A DNA stretch of 64,000 bases from Scyliorhinus canicula (taxonomy: Eukaryota): NCBI RefSeq assembly GCF_902713615.1, contig NW_024056010.1, positions 434,001-498,000 on the forward strand. The letters run 5' to 3'. Shown here piece after piece: positions 18,517-59,435 of this stretch. Under the pieces are notes generated by a model that saw only the letters and a program-made list of their open reading frames with translations, ran no database searches and was not told the origin of the DNA. Both the position numbers and the translations under genes were made by a program. Positions within the stretch are counted from its first letter, which is position 1; every line of letters begins with the position of its first letter.

Positions 18517-19665
18517 TCACTCCTGAACATGATTAACAGCATCAATAAAGGAAGAATCCAAAATTTGTAGTCGCTTGTGAACTCGCTGGTGTGTTAGCAA
18601 GTGGGATGACTGAGTAAATCCCTTTCCACAGACGTTACAGGTGAATGGCCTCTCCCCAGTGTGAATGCGATGATGTTTCAGAAGATAAGATGAATGAAAA
18701 AATTCCTTCCCACATCTGGAGCAGGTGAACGGCCTCTCCCCACTGTGAACTCTCTGGTGTGTCAGCAGGTTGGATGACTGACTGAATCCCTTCCCACACA
18801 CAGAACAGCTGAACGGCCTCTCTCCAGTGTGAACTCGTTGGGGATTCAATAGGTTGGATGAACGAGTGAATCCCTTCCCACACACTGTGCAAGTGAACGG
18901 CCTCTCCTCACTGTGAACCTGCTGATGTGTCAGAAGGTTGTATGAACGTGTGAATCCCTTCCCACAGTCAGAACAGGTGAACGGTCTATCCCCTGTATGA
19001 AGTTGCTGGTGTATCAGAAGGTTGGATGAATTAATGAATCCTTTCCCACAGTCAGAGCAGGTCAATGGCCTCTCCCCGGTGTGAATTCTCTGGTGGTTCA
19101 GTAGGGCAGATGGACGGCTGAAACCTTTCCCGCAAACAGAGCAGGTGAATGGCCTCTCCCCAGTGTGAGCATATTGGTGTGTTAGTAAATCCTTTTTGTT
19201 TTTAAAGCTCTTCTCACAGTCAGGACAGTTAAAAGATTTGTTATCAGAATGAACAAGTTGATGTGTCTGCAGGTGGGATGACTGAATGAATCCTTTCCCA
19301 CACAGGGAGCAGGAGAACGGTCTCTCTCCAGTGTGAATACGTTGATGTGTCAGCAGATCCTTTTTACATTTAAAACTCTTCTCACAGACAGGACATATAA
19401 ACGGTCTCTTACCAGTGTGAACAAGCTGATGAGTCACAATGTGGAATGACCGAGTGAATCCCTTCCCACAAACAGGGCAGGTGAATGGCCTCTCCTCAGT
19501 GTGAACTCGCCGGTGTGTCAGAAGGTTGTATGAATGGGTGAATCCCTTCCCACAAATGGAGCAAATGAACGGTCTCTCCCCAGTGTGACTGCGACGATGA
19601 ACTTCCAGTTGTGATGGGTAACTGAATCCCTTCCCACAGTCCGCACATTTCCACGGTTTCTCCAT
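18517..19665 (-). CDS. C2H2 zinc-finger protein ZF-3 (13 fingers, one with H>P) with translated C-terminal tail
   Basis: ORF 18517..19713; accATGG at 19665; ends ...HQRVHKRLQILDSSFIDAVNHVQE*. Confidence 0.9.
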   Translation of the reverse strand: MEKPWKCADCGKGFSYPSQLEVHRRSHTGERPFICSICGKGFTHSYNLLTHRRVHTEERPFTCPVCGKGFTRSFHIVTHQLVHTGKRPFICPVCEKSFKCKKDLLTHQRIHTGERPFSCSLCGKGFIQSSHLQTHQLVHSDNKSFNCPDCEKSFKNKKDLLTHQYAHTGERPFTCSVCGKGFSRPSALLNHQRIHTGERPLTCSDCGKGFINSSNLLIHQQLHTGDRPFTCSDCGKGFTRSYNLLTHQQVHSEERPFTCTVCGKGFTRSSNLLNPQRVHTGERPFSCSVCGKGFSQSSNLLTHQRVHSGERPFTCSRCGKEFFHSSYLLKHHRIHTGERPFTCNVCGKGFTQSSHLLTHQRVHKRLQILDSSFIDAVNHVQE

Positions 19666-20309
19666 GGTGAGGGTGTTGTTATGTCTCTCCCGTTTAAAGC
19701 CTTGTCGACACACGCAAAAGGAGTATAGTTTCTCCCTGCTGTGAATGGTGTGGTTTTCTTTTAGGCTGTGTAACTAGTTCAAGCTCTTTCCAGTCAGTGC
19801 AATGAAACACTCTCATTCGGGTGTGTGTGTGTCTCGGTGCTTTTCCAGTCACACTGATCTTTCAAATTTTTTTCCTCAAATGGAAGAGACAAACATTTCT
19901 CCTTACAGTTTCAAAGACTGATTCAGCTCCTGATGAATCGAGTGGCTGTCAGATCTCAATGTGATGTTTGGTTTTGAGTTTTCTGTCGGCCAATCCTCCA
20001 CTTCCAATATCCTGTGAAAGTAATTTACAAAAACCATCACTGTCAGTCCAGGATAGAAATTCTGAACAGACAATTCTAGTTTCTCTGGAACATTTTTTGC
20101 TCTCTTGTTCCCCTAAAGCTGTAAATCCCCGTCCCACACACTCTCCCTCCTCCCTGGGCTGAAATCCAAACCCATCTCACCATGCTGCCCTTCTTTCCTC
20201 CACTCCCAGTTTTCTCCCTCCCTCTCCTCTGCCTGGGATCAGTTCTCCAGCTACTGTCTGCAGACTGACAATAAAACCAATGGGTCTTATTGGGGGGTTT
20301 GGGTTCTCA

Positions 20310-24968: not shown

Positions 24969-25351
24969 TTACTGTTTATGAAGCTCAAGATCGAATTTGC
25001 TTTGCCATCTATTCTATTTAATATGTCTTGTAGATATACAAAATTCCTCTTCACCTCTTTCTCTCTCCTCCCAAAGAGGCCAGTTGGGGTTTTTATAACA
25101 ATTCAGCAGTTTTCATGGTCACTTTTTCCCAGTGCCGGCCCCACAAATGACCAGATTCATTCAGCTCAATTTCACAACCTGCCTTTGTGTTTTTGTGGGT
25201 TCTCTCTCACTCCCTATTTTCTGTTCTTAAATCAGTTTCACAGGGTGTTCGAAGGGGAGGATTCAAAGTCCGGAATCTCAAACCAGGCATCACATCAGAA
25301 TCTGACAGTGTCCTCAATTTATCATTTCCTGAATATCATCGTACTTTGAAC

Positions 25352-26221
25352 ATGGAAGGAAAAAGCATCGTTCACAGTGGGGAGAAACCGTACACGTGTT
25401 GTGTGTGTGAACGAGGATTCAGTCAATCATCAGGCCTCACAAGCCACAAATGCAGTCACACTGAGGAGAAACCGTGGAAATGTGTGGACTGTGGGAAAGG
25501 ATTCACTTACCCATCCAGCCTGGAAACTCATCGACGCAGTCACACTGGGGAGAGGCCATTCACCTGCTCCACGTGTGGGAAGGGATTCACTGAGTCATCC
25601 ACACTGCGGCAACACCAGCGAATTCACACTGGGGAGAGGCCATTCACCTGCTCCAAGTGTGGGAAGGGATTCACTCTGTCATCCACTCTGTCCACACACC
25701 AGCGAGTTCACACTGGGGAGAGATCATTCACCTGCTCAGAGTGTGGGAAGGGGTTCATTCAGTCTGTCCACCTGCGGAAACACCAGCGAGTTCACACTGG
25801 GGAGAGACCATTTACCTGCTCCGAGTGTGGGAAGGGATTCGCTGACTCATGTGACCTGCGGAAACACCAGCGAGTTCACACTGATGAGAGACCATTCCAT
25901 TGTCCAGACTGTGGGAAGAGCTATAAAAGTTCTGTGGACCTGATGCGCCATCAACGTGTTCACACTGATGAGAGACCATTCAGGTGCTCTCACTGCGGGA
26001 CTGGGTTCAGACAATCATCTAACCTCACTGTACATCAGCGAATTCACACTGGGGAGAAACCATTCACCTGCTCCCAGTGTGGGAAGAGATTCACTCAGTT
26101 ATCCGACCTGGAGAAACACCAACGAGTTCACACTGGGGAGAGACCGTTCACCTGCTCCCAGTGTGGGAACGGATTTGCCACTTCATCCAACCTGCTGAGA
26201 CACCAACGAGGCCACAAGTAA
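25352..26221 (+). CDS. C2H2 zinc-finger protein ZF-4 (10 fingers; MEGKS subfamily)
   Basis: ORF 25187..26221; aacATGG at 25352; probable acceptor tttcacag|gg near 25243. Confidence 0.9.
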
Positions 26222-26589: not shown

Positions 26590-29402
26590 CTGCTGGTGGC
26601 AGCCATGGAGTAGGAGGTCGCGCATTTGGGAGCTCCCGCTCGTGACGGACCTTTTGAACCTTTTCTCCCGATTTGTTTTGGAATTCTATTAGAAACATCG
26701 GTGGAGAGTGAGACAGTGAGGAGAAATCCCCCACCAGTATGTGGAGCTGTGGACCAGAAATGGTCGTCCAAGAAGAATTAGTTGAGCAGCGAAGCTGACT
26801 GTAGAACCTGCAGCACGGGAAAGCATGGCAGAGGCGCAGGATCCCGGTTTGGTGGCACAGTGGTCAATGTTACCGCGGGTGGAGTTCATTCAGGAGAGCT
26901 TCACCAAGCAAATGAAGGCAACCTAATTAAGGCAAGGATTGATTGGGTGGAACAGGGGCTGGAAGCCCATGGACCGGCGATCCAGAAGGTGGCCGAGCAC
27001 GAGGACCATTTAACCGCTTTGGAGGTGGAGGTGGGGCTGATGAGGGACCACCAGAAAAAGTTGCAGGAGGACCTGGAGAACAGGTCCCAGAGACAGAACC
27101 TGAGGATTGTCGGCCTCCTGGAGGGCAGTGAAGGGTCGGACGCAAGGGCATGTGTGACAAATATGCTGGAAAAGCTGATGGGAGATGGAGCGTTTTCTCG
27201 ATCCTTGGAAGTAGATAGAGCGCTTGGGAGTAAGCCGCGAGCGATATGAACCTCCGAGGGTGATCGTTTAGAATGATTGAGGAGCAGGGGGTGGGGTGCT
27301 TCTGTTATTTGGGAATCCAGGTGGCACGGGAATGTTAAATCTGACCCGGCTAGTAGAGCGAATGAAGGAGGACTTTAGAAGGTGGGACATGCTCCCGCTG
27401 TCACTGGCGGGGAGGGTACACACCGTGAAAATTACGGTCCTCCCGGGATTTCTGTTTGTTTTCCAGTGCCTCTCCATCTTTATCCCAAAGGCCTCTTTTT
27501 TTTAAAATTTAGAGTACCCAATTATTTATTCCAATTAAGGGGCAATTTAGCATGGCCAGTCCACCTACTCTGCACATCTTTGGGTTGTGGGAGCGAAACC
27601 CACGCAGACACGGGGAGAATGTGCAAACTCCACACGGACAGTGACCCAGGGCCGGGATTCGAACCCGGGTCCTCAGCGCCGTAGGCAACAATGCTAACCA
27701 CTGTGCCACCGTGCTGCCCTCAAAGGCCTCTTTTAAACCGGTAAACAAGGTGATTTTGGGTTTTGTGTGGGCGGGTAAAACCCCACGAGTGAAGAAAGTG
27801 TTGCTGGAGCGTAGTCGAGGGTGGTCTGGCACTGCCGAACGTTAGCAACTATTACTGGGTGGCAAATAAAGCCATGATTAGGTAGTGGGGGGGGGTCGGT
27901 GTGGGAGCGAGTCGAGGTGGCATTGTGTAAGGACATAAGTCTGGGAGCATTGATAACGGCACCTCTGCCGTTCTCGCCAGCCCGTGTACTCCACAAGCCC
28001 GGCGGCGGCCCTGAGAGTCTGGGGTCAGTGGAGGAAGCACATGAGTGGAGGGCACATCGGTCTGGGCCCCGATTTGTATCAACCACCAGTTTGTACCGGG
28101 ATGGGGGATTTCGGAGGTGGCAGAGAGCAGGGATCAAGAGGATGGGAGATTTATTCATAGATGGGAGCTTTCCCTGTCTGAAGGATTTAGAGGAGAAATT
28201 TGAATTGCCGGCAGGAAACGGATTCAGGTATCTGCAGGTATGGGATTTTTTGCGAAGGCAGGTTTCGACTTTTCCGCTCCCACCACCACAGGGATACAGG
28301 ACAAGGGTAGTTTCTAGAACGGGGGTGGGAGAGGGAAAGGTCTCGGATATCTACAAAGAACTTGTGGAGTCGGATTTAACTCAGATAGAGGAGCTAAAGG
28401 GTAAATGGGAAGAGGAGCTATGGGGAGGGATAGAGGCCGGTCTGTGGATTTGAGCAGAGTCAATACGTCCTCATCATGTGCCAGGCTCAGCCTGATACAA
28501 TTTCAGGTCATTCACCGGGCACAATTTTATTTTCAAATTTATAGAGTACAAAATTTATTTTTTCCAATTAAGGGGCAATTTAGCATGGCCAATCCACCTA
28601 CCCTGCACATCTTTGGGTTGTGGGGCCGAAACCCACGCAGACACGGGGAGAACATGCAAACTCTACATGGACAGTGACCCGGGGCCGGGATCGAACCTGG
28701 GACCTCAGCGCTGTGAGGCAGCAATTCTAACCACCGTGCCACCCCATTCACACTGCATATGACGGTGGCCCGGATGAGCTTGTTTTTTGGGGTAGAGGAG
28801 AGGTGTGCGGTCGGGGGGGGGGGCGGGAAGGAGGGGGCGGCGGGAAGGGGGGGCGGCGGGAGGGTGGGAAGTCATATCCATATGTTCTGGGCATGCCCGA
28901 AGCTTGGGGGATTCTGGCAGGGTTTTGCAGGTGTCATGTCCACGGCCCTAGAAACAAGGGTGGGGCCGAGCCCAGAGGTGGCAGATTTTGGAGTCCAGGG
29001 GGCGAGAGAGGCTGATGTCTTGGCCTTTGCCTCCCTGGTAGCCCGGAGACGGATATTGCTAGCGTGGAGGGACTCGAAGCCCCCCGGAATCAGAGATCTG
29101 GGTTAGCGACATGGCTGGGTTTCTCAGTCTTGAAAAAAAATCAAGTTTACCCTCAGAGGGTCAACGCGAGGGTTCATCCGGAGGTGGAAGCCGTTTGTCG
29201 ACTTCTTCAGAGAAAATTAACTGTCAGCAGAGGCAAAAAACTTGAAGGGGAGGGGGGTAGTTAAGCTATTTTCTGTTGAGGGTAGGAGGGACTTTTTAGG
29301 GATGGAGATGATTTATGCACAATGTTTTATGTTTCAATTTGCATTGTTTACTGTTGTCACTTATTATAAAATTACAAAAACCTTAATAAAATTTTTTTAA
29401 AA
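26590..29402 (+). mobile_element. L1-clade element with 5'UTR, ORF1, large ORF2 deletion and 3' end; two nested SINEs
   Basis: ORF1 EDLENRSQRQNLRIVGLLEGSEG joins at ~27265 to post-RT ORF2 (RWDMLPLSLAGRVHTVKITVLPGFLFVFQCL; HIHMFWACPKL); AATAAA and A/T tail at 29384-29402; SINEs at 27500-27720(-) (TSD caaaggcctctttt) and ~28525-28745(-). Confidence 0.85.
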
Positions 29403-29403
29403 T

Positions 29404-29565
29404 CAGCATCGCCAAAATCAGATCATCTGCACATTGCCACATTGCTGTTTGTGCCATGTTGCTTTGTGGAAATTGGCTGCTGCATTTCCTATAACAGTGA
29501 CGACACTTCAGAAGCACTTTGGGACATGCTGTGGTTATGAAAGGCGCTACAGAAGTGCAAGTTTT
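29404..29565 (+). mobile_element. DeuSINE (SacSINE1/AmnSINE1-like) 3' part
   Basis: cacattgctgtttgtg...aaattggctgctgcatttccta...acagtgac..cacttca...gcactttggga...tgaaaggcgcta; second remnant at ~31305-31405. Confidence 0.7.
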
Positions 29566-29586
29566 AAATTGAAGATTGATGCTTTC

Positions 29587-30311
29587 TGATAGTAATTGAT
29601 TTCAGACATCCCCAATTAATAAATTTGCTTTGGTTCGGACAAGACTTTAACCAATTAAAGCAAAGGCAGAATTCTGGACAGTAAATTTAAAAAGGAGTTT
29701 TTTAAAGAGAAGCTTTACTGACTAACTTGAAGACATTTACGTTTACTTCAAGGTGGTGATCAGTCTGTAGAAGCGTAACCCACCCTGGCTCCTTCTTTGA
29801 CACTAATTTCCTTGGAAGTCGGCCTCGAGAGTCTTCAGTTCTTGGCCAACAAGGAAGACCTTCGGAACCTCGACTTTTACCCCCAAAGTGACCATTACCT
29901 CATGTCAGAGTTGGGCCTGTGGTAACATGACCATTGGTTAATTAGGCACCAGTTTAATTTAATTGGATCTTTAATTACTGACACCACCCTCTTTCATTAC
30001 TTTTCACAGGAATACAATCGAACAGTTTCATAACAGCCCTTTACCTGATTCTGCACAATTCCTTATATAGTTTTAAATGTTGAGGCTAATCAGAGTTGGA
30101 AGGTCTCCCTTGCCGCTACATTTATCTTCATTGCACATTCTTTATATACACAGCAATGAAGCTTTTACATTTTTACAACAAATAAAACTCAGACTTTTAC
30201 TATAACTACTGATTCATTATTGTTTAATTAATTGTAAATCAATTAAGGATCACTACTTATTTAATCATGTTACAGATTGGTAGCTAATTAATACAATTTT
30301 TAATTGATACA
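29587..30311 (-). mobile_element. Possible solo LTR
   Basis: TG...CA ends with imperfect flanks TTTC/TTTG; LTR-like composition only. Confidence 0.3.
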
Positions 30312-30349
30312 TTTGATACAAGATACACGAGGTCACTTAGGCTTCACCT

Positions 30350-30490
30350 GGTGTCTGTGTCTATATTTACATTGTGTATTTGTCATATGTCTGAGTTTTT
30401 CATGTATGGAACGATCTGTCTGGACTGTTCGCAGAACAATACTTTTCACTGTACCTCGGTACACGTTACAATAAATCAAATCCAATCAAA
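30350..30490 (+). mobile_element. Rex1-type 3' end fragment
   Basis: aatacttttcactgtacctcggtacacgttacaataaatcaaatccaatc matches the tail of the element at 15440. Confidence 0.75.
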
Positions 30491-33179
30491 GAGACAGTTT
30501 CCTACTAATCTTCAGATTGAACAATGAGCCTTCTTAAGAATTATTCATTCATGGGAGGTGGGAGTCACTGGCTGGACCAGCATTTACTGCTCATTCCAAT
30601 TGCCTTTGAACTGCGTATCTTGTGAGGCTATTTCAGAGGACACTTACAAATCAACCACAACATTGTTGTGGATCTGGAGTCACGTATAGGCCAGGACACA
30701 TAAGGAGAGCATAGTCCAAAAGGACATTAATGAACCAGATGGGTTTTTACAACAATCAACAGTCATAATTCGACTTTTAATTTGAGATTTTACTCAATTT
30801 CACCATGTGTCACAGGCAGATTCAATCCCAGATCCCCAGAGCTTTAACCTGGGTCTCTGGATTACTAGCCCAGTAACAATACCATTACTCCACTGCCCAG
30901 CCCACATAGTCTTGGCAGAATATGATGTTTGTAACTTCTCACAATTATAAAAGTAATTCATTTTTCAAACAAATTCTGATAGCTCTGCAGTTTCTGGAAA
31001 CATTTTGGTTGATCGTGTTATTTTTAAAAATAAAGATCTAGTCTTTGCAATATAATTACCTAATACACCAATTCACTAATGATAATTAATGTTAACTACT
31101 GAATAATCATGAATTTAATTCTTGTTTTTTGCTATGAAATCAATACATAGTTCATATAGAAAAGGTACAGAAGGTGAAATGGCTGCAGGAAGCCACATGT
31201 TAGAGATATAAAAGGGCTTCCTTGACCTTATTATTAATGACAGTGACTGCACTACGAAAATAACAATTTAAAAACTAAATGTGATTACACATGCGTACTT
31301 ACAGCGTCCTACATTACAACAGTGAATATGATTCAAAAGTACTCCATTGGCTTAAAACACTTCAGGTGGTCCAGTGGTAGTGAGAGGTTTTATAAAAATG
31401 TACATTTGTACTAATTGTCCACAAACGAGGATATATTACACTTGATGTCCTCACCAAAATCATTGATAAAGATTGAGTCTTAATTTTGTGTAATAACAAC
31501 GGCATTGGCACCATTTTGAATACTCTGTGAAACTCCCGACACACCATACGCAGAATTATTTGTTGTAAAACACAGCGAGTTGTTGTGATTTGGAATGCAC
31601 TGTCCATAAATGGTGCTAGAATCTCATTGGACTGTAACTTCCTAAAGGGAATTTGGTACATTCTGAAAAAGAAAACAAAATAGTCGAACTATGGAATTAA
31701 ATGGGTCGCTGTACAAAGAGCTGGCACGAGAAAAATGGGCCAATTAGACTTCTCAGTGCTCGAGGAGCCTTGTGTACATGTAAAGCGAGTGGTAATGACC
31801 TGGAACCTACTGCCTATGAGGGTGGGAGATGCAGAGATGACAGAAGGATTGCAATAGGAAATTGGACAGGCACTGAGAGAAATAAACACACAGGGATTAG
31901 GGGATAGAACGGGGCAATGGACAGACTGGCTTCCTCCACAGGGAGCCGACATGGTACCAAAGGGCTGAATGGCCCCATTCCCCACCCTCCAGATGCTGTG
32001 ATCGCAGGAGAGAAATTCAGCTGCTCCAGTCACTCCAACTAACTGGAGTCCCTCATCCCTGGTACCATTCTCATTAATGTCCTCTACACCCCAAGAACAT
32101 CACATCTTTCCGAAAGTGGGGAGCCCATATATAGGGTTCCATTGCAGAGGGATAGAATTGAAAAACATGGAGGAAATGTTCAGCTTGTTTAGAACGATGG
32201 TTAGACAACACTGGGAGCTGTATCAACATTGGTGATCTCCATTTTGATAAAGGAAATAGAGGCACTGGATAAGGCGCAACAAAGATTCATAATATACAGA
32301 ACTGAGAGCATTTAACACTCAGGAAAGGCTGGGGCTGCTTTTTTCTGGTAAAGCAAAGGCTGATGGGTGACCTGGTGGAAGTCTTTGAGATTATGAAGGG
32401 ATTCAATAATCCAATAGGAATTTCAGTGGAAACCTCTTTCCCCAGCGAGTGGTGAGAACGTGGAACTCGTTACCACAGCGAGTGGTTGAGATGAACAGCA
32501 TGAACCCATTGAACGTAAAGCCAGATACATACATGAGGGAGAAAGGAATAGAGGAGATGCTGATGGGGGGAGATGTTAGGTGGTGGGTGGAGGATCATGT
32601 GGAGCATAAATACTGACAAAGTCCATGACTAATCTCAGCCGGTATGGGAATTTAACCTGTGCTGTTGGTGTCACTCAGCACAAACCAGCCAACTGAGCTA
32701 ACCAATCCCTGTGTAAATCTGTAATAATTCCTTCAATATTAGTGATTGCCTGTCTCCCACCATACTATTTAATGTAGTTTCCCAGTGCACCTCAGACAAC
32801 ATGCCCCTCATACCCTGATTGTTTTCTTCTGTGAGAAGCACGAAGATAATTAAAACAAAATAATTATGTAACCACCATAGCCCATCTTCATGGCAATGAG
32901 GCATGATTTTTGGGGTTTCCAAACAGAAATGGTAATGAAACATCTTCTAACCGCAAAACCCCTTTCACTCCTTGTGAAATGCAAAACCAGATATTCGCAA
33001 GAAGGCTCAGAGAGAATCAACCCACTGGAGACGAAGCCGTCTGACCGGCCAGTCCAGCAGAAAGAAACCCTCTGACCATCCCCATTGACCAACAGAATGA
33101 ACAAAATGCAGTCCTGGATGTAATTGAGAACAGAAACAATAACAGCAGAATCCAATCCCTGTAATCTATTGTGAACTAT

Positions 33180-35984: not shown

Positions 35985-37208
35985 TCAATAAATCCCTTCC
36001 CACACTGAGAGCAGGTGAATGGCTTCTCCCCCAGTGTGAATTTGCTGGTGTGTCTGCAGATTGGATAAATCACTGAATGCGTTCCCACACTGACAGCAGG
36101 TGAACAGCTTCTCCCCAGTGTGAACTCGCAGATGGTTCTTTAGGTTGGATGAAGCTCGGAATCTCTGCCCACACTGAGAGCAGGTGAATGGCTTCTCCCC
36201 AGTGTGAACTCTCTGGTGTGTCTGCAGACTGGATGACTGAGTGAATCCCTTCCCACAGTTAGAGCAGATGAACGGGCGCTCACCAGTGTGAACTCGCTGA
36301 TGGATACGCAGGTTGGGTAAATCACGGAATCCTTTCCCACACTGAGAGCAGCTGAATGGCCTCTCCCCAGTGTGAACTCGCTGGTGTGTCTGCAGGATGG
36401 ATAACTGAGTAAAACCTTTCCCACACTGAGAGCAGATGAATGGCCTCTCCCCAGTGTGAATTCGCTGGTGTGTCTGCATGGTGGATAAATCACTGAATCC
36501 CTTCCCACACTGAGAGCAGGTGAACGGCCTCTCCCCAGTGTGAATTTGCTGATGTCTCTGCAGGGTGAATGAATCAATGAATCCCTTCCCACACTGAGAG
36601 CAGGTGAACGGCCTCTCCGTAGTGTGAACTCGCTGATGTCTCCTCAGGGTAGATGAATCAATGAATCCCTTCCCACATTGAGAGCAGGTGAATGGCTTCT
36701 CCCCAGTGTGAACTCGCCGGTGTTTCCGCAGGGTGGATGAATCAATAAATCCCTTCCCACACTGAGAACAGGTGAATGGTCTCTCCCTAGTGTGAACTCG
36801 CTGGTGTGACTGCAGGTTGGATAAAGTATGGAATCCCTTCCCACACTGAGAGCAGGTGAATGGCCTCTCCCCAGTGTGAAGTCGCTGATGTCTCCGCAGG
36901 TTGGATAAAGCACGGAATCTCTGCCCACACTGAGAGCAGGTGAATGGCCTCTCCCCAGTGTGAACTCGCTGGTGTGACTGCAGGCTGGATAAATCAATTA
37001 ATCCCTTTCCACACTGAGAGCAGGTGAATGGTTTCTCCCCAGTGTGAACTCGCTGGTGTGCCTGCAGGTGCGATAACCGAGTGAACCCCTGCCCACACTG
37101 AGAGCACGTGAACGGCCTCTCCCCAGTGTGACTGCGTCGATGAGTCTCCAGCTCAGATGGGAATCTGTATTCCTTCCCACAGTCCCCACATTTCCACGGT
37201 TTCTCCAT
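35985..37208 (-). CDS. C2H2 zinc-finger protein ZF-5 (14 intact fingers, then frameshift)
   Basis: ORF 35985..37244; agcATGG at 37208; +1 insertion in a C-run near 36030; further fingers at 35823-36030 and 33441-33565 are out of frame or split by the CR1. Confidence 0.8.
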
Positions 37209-37684
37209 GCTTTGGGTCTCCTCGTGTCTCTCCAGATTGGACAATCAGCGGAAGCCTTGTCTACACACAGAACATGTGCAATTTCTCTCCTCACTGTGAA
37301 TGGTGTGACGTTTTCTCAGACTGTGTCACAGTTGAAGCTCTTTTCACAGTCAGTTCACTGGAACACTCTCACTCGGGTGTGTGTTGTGTGGGTCTCGGTG
37401 CTTTTCCCGTCACACTCACGTTTAAAACCTTTTGACGCCGACAGATCGGACAAACATTTCTCCTACTCGCCGATGATATTCAGAGCCCGATGATATTCAG
37501 ATCAAAAGGAATCGTTTGAGTTTGACGTGATGTTTGAGACGTCTGTCTGCAATTCCTCCTCTTCCAATATCCTTTAAAAACAATTTATAAAAGTTATCAT
37601 TGTTGGCACAGGATAGAAATTCGGGGAAGACAATTCTAGTTTCTATGGAACATTATTTCCTCTCTTGTGTTCGAGCTTCTGAGT

Positions 37685-41924: not shown

Positions 41925-43259
<1,335 letters not shown>

Positions 43260-45299: not shown

Positions 45300-45935
45300 A
45301 CACCATAAGATATAGGAGCAGAATTAGGCCACTCGCCCCATAGAGTCTGCTCTACCATTCAATCATGGCTGATATTTTTTCATCCCCATTCTTCTGCCTT
45401 CTCCCCAGAACACCTGATCCCCTAATTAATCAAGAATCTATCTATCTCTGTCTTAAAGACACTCAGTGATTTGTCCTCCACAGCTTTCTGCGGCAAAGTG
45501 CCACAAATTCACCACCCTCTGGCTGAAGAAATTCCTAAATCTCTGTTTTCAAGAATGGTACCTTTAGTCTGAGATTGAGCCCTCTGGTTCTAGTTTTTCC
45601 TGCAAGTGGAAACATCCTCTCCACATCCACTCTATCCAGGACTCACAGTATCCTGTACGTTTCAGTAAAATCCCCCCCCCCCCCCCCCCCCCGCCCCCCC
45701 CAATCCTTCTGAACTCTCAACTAGTGCAGACCCAGAATCCTCATACGACAAGTTCTTCATTCCAGGGATCATTCTTGTGAACCTCCTATGGACCCTTTCC
45801 CAAGGCTGGCACATTGTTCCTTTGATACGGGGCCCAAAACTCCAAACGTTACCTGCCTTATACAGCCTCAGAAGTACAGCCCTGCTTTTGTATTCGAGCC
45901 CTCTCGACATGAGTGTTAACATTGCATTTGCCTTC
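45300..45935 (-). mobile_element. CR1 3' portion (HE1 SINE follows at 45940-46230, +)
   Basis: KANAMLTLMSRGLEYKSRAVLLRLYKA; tail ctaattctgctcctatatcttatgg. Confidence 0.8.
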
Positions 45936-46720: not shown

Positions 46721-47794
46721 AATCAGGAAGAGAGAAATTTGCGAATTGATTCCTGGACATTTTTTAAATTCGTTGTTGGGATGTGGACGTCGCAGTCTGT
46801 GCCAGCATTTGTTGTCCGTCCCTAATTGCCCTTGAGGGAGCATTTAAAGGTCAACCATATTGCTGTGGGTCTGGAGTCACATATAGGCCAGACAAAAATG
46901 GCAGATTTCCTTCCTTAAATGACATTCGTGAACCAGATGTTTTTTTTTTATAACAATCATCAATGGTTTCATGGTCACCATTAACCTTTTAATTCCAGAT
47001 TTTTATTGAATTCAAATTTCACCATCTGCAGTGGCAAGATTTGAACCTGGGAACCCCAGAGCATTGTTCTGGGGGACAATACCATTACGCCACCACCGCC
47101 ATTAACTAACATGGATTCTGGAAACTCCTATACAGGTTGAGAAGGGGAAAAGATGTGCACACAGCAAACTGAAACCAAGAAGAATTTTGGTCTTTTCTGA
47201 ATGTCTATCTGGGACTGACAGAACTTCCTTTTTCAGGGTGTTTTGGAGAACTTAACTCAGGCAGAGGAGAGAGAGGGAGAAAACTTGGAGTTGAGGAAAG
47301 TAACGGAGAAGATGGTGAGATGGGTTTGGATTTCAGCCCAAGGAGGAGGGAGAGTGTGCGGGGCGGGGATTTACTGTTTTGGGGGAACAAGAGAGGGAAA
47401 AATATACCAGAGAAATTAAAATTGTCTGTTTAGAATTTCTATCCTGGACTGACAGTGATGACTTTTGTAACACCTTTTACAGGATATTAGAAGGTGAGGA
47501 GAATTTGCCATCGGAAATCTCAAACAAAACATCAGATCAACATTCAACAGAATAACTCTATTCTTCAGGACCTGAATATCATCAGCTTCTGAATGTGGAA
47601 AGAAGAAGGTTCTCATTTGGAAAAAGATTTAAAATATCAGTGTGACTGGAAGAACACCAAGAAACACTAACACCCAAATGTGTGTTCCTGAAAACTGACT
47701 GTAGCACTTACACAGCTTGAAAAAATATAACTTAATTGCTCTGGGAAGAAACTGTACACTTGTCTGTGTGGAGAGACACAAGGACACTGGCACC

Positions 47795-48616
47795 ATGGAG
47801 AAACTGTGGAAATGTGGGGAGGTATTCACATTCCCCTCCCAGCTGGTAACTCATCGACGCACTCACAGTGGGGACAGGCCGTTCACCTGCTCCTTGTGTG
47901 GGAAGGGATTCACTCGGTCGTCAAACTTAGCAATACACCAGCGGGTTCATACTGGGGAGAGGCCATTCACCTGCTCTGTATGTGGGAAGGGATTCGCTCG
48001 GTCAACACACTTAGCATTACACAAGCGGGTTCACACTGGGGAGAGGCCATTCACCTGCTCTGTGTGTGGGAAGGGATTCATTAACTCATCCAACCTAGTG
48101 TCACACCAGCGAATTCACACTGGGGAGAAACCATTCAGCTGCACTGACTGTGGAATGAGCTTTAGGCTTTCATCCACCCTGCAGAAACACCAGCGAGTTC
48201 ACACTGGGGAGAAACCATTCAGCTGCACTGACTGTGGAAAGAGCTTCAGGCATTCTAGCAGCTTCATCGTACACCAACGAATTCACAGAGGGGAGCAACC
48301 ATTCACCTGCTCTTTGTGTGGGAGGGGATTCACTCAGTCATCTAACCTAGCATTACACCAGCGGGTTCACAGTGGGGAGAGGCCGTTCACCTGCTCCGAG
48401 TGTGGGAAGGGATTCACTGATTCATGCCAGTTGCTGAGACATGAACAAGTTCACACTGGGGAAAGGCCATTCACCTGCTCCGAGTGTGGGAAGGGATTCA
48501 CTGATTCATCCCAACTGCTGAGACATGAACGGGTTCACACTGGGGAGAGGCCGTTCACCTGCCCCGAGTGTGGGAAGGGGTTCATTGATTCATCCCAATT
48601 GTTGAAACACCAGTGA
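47795..48616 (+). CDS. C2H2 zinc-finger protein ZF-7 (8 intact fingers; first and last degenerate)
   Basis: accATGG at 47795; first finger has an in-frame deletion; TGA (likely from CGA) truncates the last finger. Confidence 0.8.
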
Positions 48617-49452: not shown

Positions 49453-50312
49453 CACCAGTGAACCGTTCAGAGGAGACGGCAGCCACCAGCCATAGACACC
49501 AACACGAGTGAACCGTTCAGAGGGCACTGCAGCCACCAGCCATTGACACCAACACCAGTGAACCGTTCAGAGGAGTCGGCAGCCACCAGCCATGGACACC
49601 GACACCAGGGAACCGTTCAGAGGACACAGCAGCCACCAGCTATGGACACCAACACCAGTGAACCGTTAAGAGGAGGCGGCAGCCACCAGCCATGGACACC
49701 AACACCAGTGAACCGTTCAGAGGCGGCAGCAGCCACCAGCCATGGACACCAACACCAGGGAACCGTTCAGAGGCGGCAGCAGCAGCCACCAGCCATGGAC
49801 ACCAACACCAGGGAACCGTTCAGAGGACACAGCATCCCCAAACAGGCGCCGGAATGTGGCGACTAGGGGCTTTTCACAGTAACTTCATTTGAAGCCTACT
49901 TGTGACAATAAGAAATTTTCATTTCATTTCACACTGCAGCCACCAGCCATGGACACCAACACCCAGTGAACCGTTCAGAGGACACTGCAGCCACCAGCCA
50001 TGGACACCGACACCAGTGAACCGTTCAGAGGACACTGCAGCCACCAGCCATGGACGCCAACACCAGTGAACCGTTCAGAGGACACTGCAGCCACCAGCCA
50101 TGGACGCCAACACCAGTGAACCGTTCAGAGGAGACGGCAGCCACCAGCCATGGACACCGACAGCAGTGAACCGTTCAGAGGGCACTGCAGCCACCAGCCA
50201 TGGACACCAACACCAATGAATCGTTCAGAGGACAATGCAGCCACCAGCCATGGACACCGACACCAGTGAACCGTTCAGAGGAGACGGCAGCCACCAGCCA
50301 TGGACACCAACA
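49453..50312 (+). repeat. 50-bp minisatellite, about 15 units, split by a SINE tail (49835-49930)
   Basis: Unit caccagtgaaccgttcagaggacactgcagccaccagccatggacaccaa recurs every 50 bp (e.g. 50011, 50061, 50111). Confidence 0.95.
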
Positions 50313-50514
50313 CTCACTCGGCACCATCCTTCTGTTTGTCCTCCAGGAGTCAGAAACCATCCTCACCTAAAAAAGTGTTCACTATTTCTGTCCATTTAAC
50401 TCAAGTTTGTTGCTTCCCAATCAACTGTTTTAAAATCGTTCCTGAGCTCAATCCTCTTTTCGGGTAATGATTCCTCACTCTGGATCTTTCAAGTGGTGTT
50501 AGGAGTGGAATCAC

Positions 50515-51120
50515 ATCGCCTCTCGGCCTTTTGGCTAAGGTCAGCGTGAGGTCAGGTATAATAAGCCCACAAGACATAGGAGCAGAATTAGGCCACTCGG
50601 CCCATCGAGTCTGCTCTGCCATTCAATCATGGCTGATATTTTTCTCATCCCCATTCTCCTGCCTTCTCCCCATAACCCCTGATCCCCTTATTAATCAAGA
50701 ACCTATCTATCTCTGTCTTAAAGACACTCCGTGATTTAGCCTCCACAGCCTTCACAGCAATGAGTTCTACAGATTAACCACCCTCTGGCTGAAGAAATTC
50801 CTCCTCATCTCTGTTTTAAAGGATCATCCTTTAGCCTGAGATGGTGTCCTCTGCTTCTAGTTTTCCTACAAGTGGAAACATCCTCTCCACGTGCTCTCTA
50901 TCCAGACCTCACAGTATCATGTAAGTTACAATAAGATCCCCCCTCATCCTTCTAGTGCCTGGATCTGGGATGTCGCTCTCGTGGGGACCATGAATTGGAT
51001 TCAATTTGAATTGGTTTTTGGAGCAGGCAAGGAGCTGGATTAGGGGTTTGCTCCTGTCCACATTCTGAGATCTGGCTTTGTAACTCTGATAAAGTAATAA
51101 AAAGAAAACAATTTAAAAAA
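50515..51120 (+). mobile_element. U2-snRNA-derived retroposon (SINEU-like or chimeric U2 retrocopy), split by a CR1 fragment
   Basis: Starts at U2 nt 1 (atcgcctctcggccttttggctaagg); resumes ~50955 with U2-like ...ggtttttggagcagg...ggattaggggtttgctcctgtccac; non-U2 tail, AATAAA 51096, A-rich end; 14-bp TSD aggagtgg(a/g)atcac at 50501-50514 and 51121-51134. Confidence 0.85.
50567..50954 (-). mobile_element. CR1 3' end nested in the U2-derived element
   Basis: Near-identical to 45300-45670; tail ctaattctgctcctatgtcttgtgg. Confidence 0.85.
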
Positions 51121-51347
51121 AGGAGTGGGATCACAGTGGTCGGGATCAACGACTTGAGAAACAACAGCCTGAATTAAATGTAAATGGAGAATTTGAGTCT
51201 GGACTCGTGGAGTTTACAAAGCAGATATTTCTGTAGGTGTGTAGATAGGAAGAGATGAGTGAAAGTAAACTTGCCCCCATGAGAGACAGATAAAGAGGAA
51301 ATTATAATTGAAATAAGGAAATAACAGACACAAAACAAATACTTTTT

Positions 51348-51695
51348 AATCATAGAATTTAAAGTGCAGAAGGAGGCCATAAGGCCCATCGAGTCTGCAC
51401 CGGCTCTTGGAAAGAGCACCCTACCCAAGGTCAACACCTTCACCCTAGCCCCATAACTCAGTAACCCCACCCAACACTAAGGGCAATTTTAGACACTAAG
51501 GGCAATTTATCATGGCCAATCCACCTAACCTGCACATCTTTGGACTGTGGGAGGAAACCGGAGCACCCGGAGGAAACCCATGCACGCACGGGGAGGATGT
51601 GCAGACTCCGCACAGACAGTGACCCAAGCCGGAATCGAACCTGGGACCCTGGAGCTGTGAAGCAATTGTGCTATCCACAATGATACCGTGCTGTC
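51348..51695 (-). mobile_element. HE1-type SINE with CR1 tail
   Basis: Full head, body and ggcctccttctgcactttaaattctatgat tail; similar copies at 61013-61317(-) and 63507-63735(-). Confidence 0.85.
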
Positions 51696-58469: not shown

Positions 58470-59435
58470 ATGGAGAAACCGTGGAAATGTGGGGACTGTG
58501 GGAAGGGATTCAATTACCCATCCCTGCTGGAAATGCATCGACGCAGTCACACTGGAGAGAGGCCGTTCACCTGCTCCACGTGTGAGAAGGGATTCATTCA
58601 GTCATCCCACCTGCTGACCCACCAGCAAGTTCACATTGATGAGAAGCTGTTTAACCAGTCAGACTGTGATAACAACTCTAAAAGCTCCGAGGACCTGGTC
58701 AAGCACCAGGTTGTTCGCACTGAGAGACAGTTCAGCTGCTCTCACTGTGGGAAGCTATTCAAACGATCACAGAATCTCATTGAACACGAACGCACTCACA
58801 CTGGGGAGAGACCATTCACCTGCTCTGTGTGTGGGAAAGGATTCACACGATCATCCCACCTTGCTACTCACAGACTGGTTCACAGTGATAACAGACCTTT
58901 CAAATGTACTGAATGTGAGAAGAGTTATAAAACCACAAGTGATCTGCTGATACACCAGCGAGTTCACAATGAGGAGAGGCCGTTCAGATGTACAGTGTGT
59001 GGGAAGGGATTTACTCAGTTATCTGGCCTCCAGAAACACCAGCGAGTTCACACTGGGGAGAGGTCATTCACCTGCTCCTTATGTGGAAAAGGGTTCATTT
59101 ATTTAACTAGCCTCAGATCACATAAACTTGTTCACTCGGATAAGAAACCTTTCAAATGTTCTGAATGTGAGAAGAGCTTTAAAACCACAAGTGTTCTGCT
59201 GAGACACCAGCGGGTTCACACTGGGGAGAAGCCGTTCACCTGTTCTGACTGTGGGAAGGGATTCACTCGCTCATCCAACCTGCTAACACATCAGCGAGTT
59301 CACACCGGGGAGAGGCCGTTCACCTGCTCGGACTGTGGGAAGGGATTCACTTACTCATCCCACCTGCTGACACACCAGCATACTCACACCGGGGTGAGAC
59401 CGTTCACCTTCTTTGAGGATGGGAAGTTCATCTGA
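58470..59435 (+). CDS. C2H2 zinc-finger protein ZF-9 (10 intact fingers, 1 degenerate, truncated last)
   Basis: accATGG at 58470; [10 protein letters not shown] start; 321-aa ORF. Confidence 0.9.
   Translation: MEKPWKCGDCGKGFNYPSLLEMHRRSHTGERPFTCSTCEKGFIQSSHLLTHQQVHIDEKLFNQSDCDNNSKSSEDLVKHQVVRTERQFSCSHCGKLFKRSQNLIEHERTHTGERPFTCSVCGKGFTRSSHLATHRLVHSDNRPFKCTECEKSYKTTSDLLIHQRVHNEERPFRCTVCGKGFTQLSGLQKHQRVHTGERSFTCSLCGKGFIYLTSLRSHKLVHSDKKPFKCSECEKSFKTTSVLLRHQRVHTGEKPFTCSDCGKGFTRSSNLLTHQRVHTGERPFTCSDCGKGFTYSSHLLTHQHTHTGVRPFTFFEDGKFI

Follow-up and report, generated by a model that had tools for sequence, protein, structure and literature searches.

SINE heads are nearly always derived from Pol III genes (tRNA, 7SL, and 5S), since internal promoters are present there. 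The snRNA-derived SINEs, which break this rule, have so far been published only from crocodilians. Members of SINEU are defined by heads derived from U1 or U2 snRNA, and none were detected outside crocodilians (Kojima 2015, PMC4494074). Among them, SINEU-3 is present in ~1,600 copies and is made up of U2 with an internal deletion of ~50 bp, a non-U2 stretch of ~40 nt, and poly(A); ~90% of its insertions are in Mariner-N4_AMi and are ascribed to Tx1-Mar LINEs (PMC4494074). U2 genes have external Pol II promoters, oligo-T was used as an argument against Pol III in SINEU, and the transcription of these elements in crocodilians remains unexplained (PMC4494074).

The locus described here lies in a 64-kb stretch of catshark DNA, referred to below as the window. 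A U2-derived retroposon occupies positions 50515 to 51120; it is noncoding, contains no ORF, and is 212 bp long without a nested repeat. This copy is very likely an old, dead member of a dispersed, nonautonomous family of U2-derived retroposons, a judgment that takes in the origin and mobilization proposed below. It was later split by an unrelated repeat, has no promoter, and is nonfunctional as a U2. The features of the locus are as follows.

50501 to 50514, no strand: 5' target-site duplication AGGAGTGGAATCAC, located after TT and identical to 51121 to 51134 at 13 of 14 positions.
50515 to 50561, plus strand: U2-derived head, with U2 nt 1 to 25 (5' end and stem-loop I) matched at 24 of 25 positions, and with an Rfam alignment and contig coverage.
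50562 to 50955, no strand: nested, unrelated 394-bp repeat of very high abundance that was inserted later than the element and does not belong to the family, as seen from family contigs joining 50561 to 50956.
50956 to 51060, plus strand: U2-derived body, recognized by a match to the stem-loop III 18-mer and by-eye U2 alignment, with a contig depth of 4.7k to 32k versus ~32 in the flanks.
51061 to 51095, plus strand: family-specific tail of ~35 nt with no detectable U2 likeness in shuffle-tested local alignment, covered by 64 to 102 distinct contigs (sites 51063 and 51070).
51096 to 51101, plus strand: polyadenylation signal AATAAA, followed after 13 nt by the terminal A-run.
51102 to 51120, plus strand: A-rich 3' end, with a terminal A-run (A6 to A7) at 51115 to 51120 that is a poly(A) remnant, from the sequence and the depth drop from 51115.
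51121 to 51134, no strand: 3' target-site duplication AGGAGTGGGATCAC, identical to 50501 to 50514 at 13 of 14 positions.

Throughout the window, a 14-mer recurring at the spacing of these target-site duplications with at most one mismatch is found at only two positions. A sequence-only reading of the window had already proposed a 14-bp duplication with one mismatch after TT, a foreign tail of ~35 nt, AATAAA, and an A-rich tract, all of which were found at the coordinates listed above.

The head of the element was compared with the human U2 reference sequence as printed in bioRxiv 10.1101/2021.08.01.454689. Positions 50515 to 50539 match U2 nt 1 to 25 at 24 of 25 sites, which is the sole such match in the window (0.00 expected by chance) and upholds the proposal that the element starts exactly at U2 nt 1 and keeps stem-loop I. 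The Rfam U2 model (RF00004) aligned its positions 1 to 30 to the head with high posterior probability; the total score was 23.6 bits versus a gathering score of 46 (E = 0.017), and the 3' part of the alignment strays into the nested repeat and is spurious. No Rfam match was obtained at gathering thresholds over the whole window, the 3' part alone (50955 to 51135) gave no U2 match in Rfam at an E value of ≤10, and a 33-nt head pattern had no match because of an indel. After U2 nt 25, the head continues with a rewritten branch-point recognition region and then the 5' half of a stem-loop IIa-like hairpin. GTAGTA, the branch-point recognition sequence, is absent from the element.

The body contains, in order, the 3' half of stem-loop IIa with a IIb-like region, which is diverged yet recognizable by eye against the printed U2; ~16 extra nt, which by eye are an apparent partial duplication; a degenerate Sm site with a lost A (GGTTTTTGG); and stem-loop III to GTCCAC. 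The U2 stem-loop III 18-mer GGAATAGGAGCTTGCTCC matches positions 51037 to 51054 with 3 mismatches and has no other match in the window (0.06 expected). In the by-eye alignment, the likeness to U2 continues past stem-loop III into GTCCAC and ends at about U2 nt 141. The basis for U2 descent of the 3' part is this 18-mer together with the by-eye alignment to the printed human U2, and the divergence of the body from U2 is roughly 30%, an estimate made by eye rather than a computed value. On these matches, the head and stem-loop III of the element evidently descend from U2. Local alignment of the ~40 nt after GTCCAC with U2 nt 142 to 187 was no better than that of shuffles (P = 0.3 to 0.57), which indicates that stem-loop IV is absent or unrecognizable. 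A decayed stem-loop IV was considered as the source of the tail and rejected, its likeness to the U2 3' end being nonsignificant at the same P values. The retention of stem-loop III, the loss of GTAGTA, the insertion before a mutated Sm site, and the lack of stem-loop IV had all been remarked upon in the sequence-only reading, and each was seen again here.

The element resembles a bona fide U2 gene (RF00004) at its 5' end and in the sequence of stem-loops I and III. However, target-site duplications take the place of promoter elements at its borders, and the 394-bp repeat interrupts it. With a subthreshold Rfam score, no GTAGTA, an Sm site without its A, and no stem-loop IV, it does not have the makeup of a functional U2 snRNA gene. 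The minimum free energy (MFE) fold of the joined element recovered stem-loop I alone and was weakly below shuffles (z of −1.5 to −2.1), which makes no case for conserved RNA structure.

The limits of the nested repeat, 50562 to 50955 (394 bp, ±1), follow from contigs of the family in which 50956 comes immediately after 50561. An insertion had been recognized previously at 50567 to 50954; the insertion itself stands, and its coordinates are corrected by the joining contigs. The summed contig depth of the nested repeat reaches up to ~30,000 times that of the single-copy flanks.

Two DNA runs, X1 and X11, each from a separate study, supplied the contigs with which membership of the element in a family was assessed; these contigs were aligned at ≥80% likeness. 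The summed contig depth over the single-copy flanks was ~32 in X1 and ~78 in X11, whereas over the body and tail (50956 to 51114) it was 3,200 to 32,000 in X1 and 9,000 to 81,000 in X11. The body core had depths of 28,773 to 32,006 (X1) and 74,338 to 81,419 (X11), ~1000 times those of the flanks in each run. The tail bins lay at ~100 to 330 times the flank depth, and contig cover in the AATAAA region (51099 to 51100) was still ~23 to 50 times the flank depth. Depth falls to the single-copy level exactly at 51115, where the A-run starts. The head was covered at only ~40 to 70 times the flank depth, perhaps because most copies are 5' truncated or simply because the piece to the left of the nested repeat is just 47 nt long. 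The contigs represent copies of the derived element and not U2 genes, because they match at ≥80% in the tail and in other segments without likeness to U2.

In each run, 64 to 113 distinct contigs have the family-majority letters at 50975, 50980, 51052, 51063, and 51070, and the sites of the body and tail that vary are spanned by 75 to 113 distinct contigs per run. The derived part of the head is also common to the family, as is indicated by the extension of up to 54 distinct contigs over 50558. In addition, contigs that pass from head to body without the nested repeat join 50557, 50561, or 50562 to 50956, 50961, or 50976, with up to 4 contigs for each joint. The copy described here differs from the family majority at ~6 listed sites in the 165 nt of body and tail, or ~4% or more. 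Since it is near the family majority (~6 sites per 165 nt) but far from U2, its template had already diverged from U2. This agrees with the sequence-only reading, in which a propagating family rather than a direct U2 retrocopy had been proposed from an already diverged template; as opposed to the contrary cases named there, a single copy and copies nearer to U2 than to each other, the contigs of both runs show many copies with derived parts in common. The family exists, and its copies have the derived body, the junction, and the tail in common. Its size is roughly on the order of 10^2 to 10^3 copies; since summed contig depth is not copy number, "hundreds to about a thousand" copies is a rough figure. 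Contigs offer only an indirect view of the family consensus, its subfamilies, and the 5' termini of the remaining copies.

Searches of the window by blastn (word size 7) with the head, the body, and the joined element found no second copy in the 64 kb, and a 25-nt word from the core had 0 exact matches in metagenome contigs. A second organism has 35% of the 31-mers taken from the body and tail, which indicates that the family, or the orthologous locus, is present in a relative. At site 51052, on the 3' strand of stem-loop III, the copy described here has the U2-like T and nearly all family contigs (96 to 103) have C; the T is either a back-mutation or the mark of an older, more U2-like subfamily.

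Like SINEU, the family has a U2-derived 5' region, a noncoding unit of <500 bp, a 3' poly(A), and multiple copies of one structure, so that the label "SINEU-like" given to it in the sequence-only reading is apt in view of its snRNA-derived head and multicopy nature. SINEU-3 is the closest to it in build, the two being compared by description only. Both are short and almost wholly U2 from the 5' end, followed by ~40 nt of non-U2 sequence and poly(A), with ~10^3 copies; both lack a recognizable internal promoter and contain internal oligo-T, which argues against Pol III. However, SINEU-3 has the ~50-bp internal U2 deletion, whereas the family here keeps a diverged middle and has ~16 extra nt; and SINEU-3 is found mostly in Mariner-N4_AMi via Tx1-Mar, whereas the copy here is in single-copy DNA at an L1-like site. 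SINEU-1 and -2 are likewise multicopy, with U1- or U2-derived heads and poly(A) tails, but in them one or, often, several short snRNA heads are joined to a long body of unrelated sequence, whereas the family here is nearly all U2 derived. SVA-type composite retroposons, which are not snRNA derived and are ~2 kb long, share with it AATAAA and poly(A), probable transcription by Pol II, and what would be L1-type mobilization in trans. No snRNA-derived SINE of a shark or other chondrichthyan was found in the literature searched, where later reviews still cite crocodilians only, in line with the sequence-only reading, which knew of no described shark equivalent. The family probably arose independently of crocodilian SINEU, since the host lineages are far apart and no SINEU was detected outside crocodilians by Kojima.

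Evidence for a second insertion came from oligo-dT RNA (X22), in which ~700 reads (51056 to 51098) contain another copy, 5' truncated to the last ~45 nt. This copy begins near GTCCAC, has the family letter at 51063 and a T>C change at 51081, ends in A9, and is flanked on both sides by GACCAGGATT, its own target-site duplication. Its 3' end (AAT-GGAC-A9) differs from that of the copy described here, and the 3' end is thus not uniform in the family. The 5' truncation, A-tail, and individual duplications are marks of LINE-mediated retroposition; the copy described here and at least one other have their own target-site duplications and A-runs, as left by target-primed reverse transcription. The ~700 reads belong to one highly expressed transcript from elsewhere in the genome. 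No X22 reads lie over the single-copy flanks, and there is no pile of read starts at 50515. The family reads in X22 are on both strands, as expected of passengers in other transcripts. The retroposon locus is silent in this sample, where family members appear solely as such passengers, and the copy described here is inert, with no evident function.

The founder RNA would have consisted of U2 nt 1 to ~141, the ~35-nt non-U2 tail, AATAAA, and poly(A). T4 and T5 runs are present inside the element, at which Pol III would stop, and these runs, together with a Pol II parent gene with external promoters, make Pol III transcription of the whole unit unlikely. A classical Pol III SINE has an internal promoter and no internal terminator; the element instead has the T4 and T5 runs and a Pol II parent gene. 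Transcription may have been by Pol II, followed by ordinary cleavage and polyadenylation at the element's own AATAAA, as is suggested by the location of this hexamer 13 nt before the A-run. Promoters of the snRNA type are external, and the RNAs made from them normally lack polyadenylation, which counts against the use of AATAAA by sources starting at U2 nt 1. An L1-type LINE that depends on poly(A) and nicks at TT/A would then have acted in trans to copy the poly(A) RNA, producing duplications of 10 to 14 bp and frequent 5' truncation; the TT/A site, the 10- to 14-bp duplications, and the A-tails suggest such a partner. No LINE reverse transcriptase was found by Pfam in 10 of the 13 window ORFs of ≥180 amino acids, in which C2H2 zinc fingers or no Pfam family was found instead. 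The complete proposal, in which a U2 retroposon family of ~10^3 copies arose independently in catsharks or in elasmobranchs more broadly and relies on Pol II for transcription, on its own AATAAA for polyadenylation, and on an L1-type LINE for mobilization, has about an even chance of being right in every part.

For the same family, a "stringent" LINE (e.g., of the Tx1, CR1, or RTE type) could instead recognize the tail of ~35 to 60 nt, which would then have been taken from the 3' end of a LINE in the manner of classical SINEs; this alternative is possible but distinctly less probable. The tail is non-U2-like and conserved in many copies, and crocodilian SINEU is ascribed to Tx1 LINEs (Tx1-Mar), both of which would fit recognition of the tail. 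However, the depth of the tail is below that of the body, which indicates that there is no more abundant LINE with this tail at ≥80% likeness, and tail-like sequence is found nowhere else in the 64-kb window. Moreover, the AATAAA with an A-run, the TT/A site, and the 10- to 14-bp duplications are L1-like, and the single-copy flanks reveal no target-repeat preference at this locus.

With mobilization by an L1-type LINE remaining the preferred reading, the other alternatives concern the family itself. The copies are very unlikely to be the sum of independent template-switch chimeras, in which reverse transcription passed from a polyadenylated RNA to U2 snRNA and no self-propagating family exists. 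Human U6-, U1-, and U2-L1 cases are documented (Buzdin 2002 and Garcia-Perez 2007, according to their citation in PMC4494074), and the founding event of the family may well have been one of this kind. Independent chimeras nevertheless predict near-U2 heads and variable junctions or partners, whereas 64 to 113 distinct contigs have one ~30%-diverged body, and the derived substitutions recur across contigs, as do the ~16 extra nt, the tail, and its junction after GTCCAC. Human snRNA retropseudogenes were reportedly described by Van Arsdell in 1981. Like the element here, these retropseudogenes and the snRNA-L1 or snRNA-mRNA chimeras start at U2 nt 1, are truncated at the 3' end, and have an A-rich end, target-site duplications, and L1-type integration. 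However, they are one-off copies of real snRNA with variable ends, whereas the family here has common derived changes and a fixed junction and tail.

Multiplication at the DNA level instead of retroposition, with the sequence carried along in a satellite, in segmental duplications, or in some larger repeat, deserves equally little credence: depth alone says nothing on how copies arose, but single-copy depth is regained exactly at the duplications and A-tail, and two insertions have different target-site duplications and A-tails, one of them being 5' truncated. Least probable of all is a single direct U2 retropseudogene decayed in place, with its depth contributed by real U2 genes, because, for all that U2 genes are multicopy and the U2 likeness of the element is real, high depth also extends over segments that are <80% U2-like and over the non-U2 tail, the target-site duplications are identical at 13 of 14 positions while the body is ~30% from U2, and the family-majority letters differ from the copy here at only a few sites.

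A remote and apparently independent second family would make U2 RNA a recurrent seed of retroposons, and if it is indeed independent, transcribed by Pol II, and mobilized by an L1-type LINE, it would represent a second, convergent origin of "SINEU." It would also add another system, equipped with an AATAAA and a poly(A) of its own, that bears on how a promoterless, Pol II-derived element propagates; with copies a few percent from the consensus and plentiful RNA data, the transcription of an snRNA-derived SINE could become directly testable. The family belongs in elasmobranch repeat libraries, since its copies would otherwise be misannotated as U2 genes or pseudogenes.

The surroundings of the retroposon include other repeats and genes. 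Just upstream, at 50201 to 50315, are two and a fraction tandem units of ~50 bp (TGGACACC...CCACCAGCCA). A cluster of C2H2 zinc-finger ORFs (Pfam) is present on both strands of the window, at 18517 to 19713, 25187 to 26221, 35985 to 37244, 42648 to 43259, 47717 to 48616, and 58470 to 59435, and the retroposon sits between two of them. A second copy of the nested repeat, 87% identical to the first, is located at 45303 to 45677. The left end of the nested repeat at 50562 is a true terminus, as the flanks diverge there, and the copy is truncated on the right, since most members of its repeat family run past 50954. A different repeat at 51341 to 51500 has a short core, GGCCCATCGAGTCTGC, in common with the nested repeat, and many X22 RNA reads switch between the two repeat contexts at this core (loose ends at 50582 and 50614), which suggests that it is a central domain common to different repeat families.
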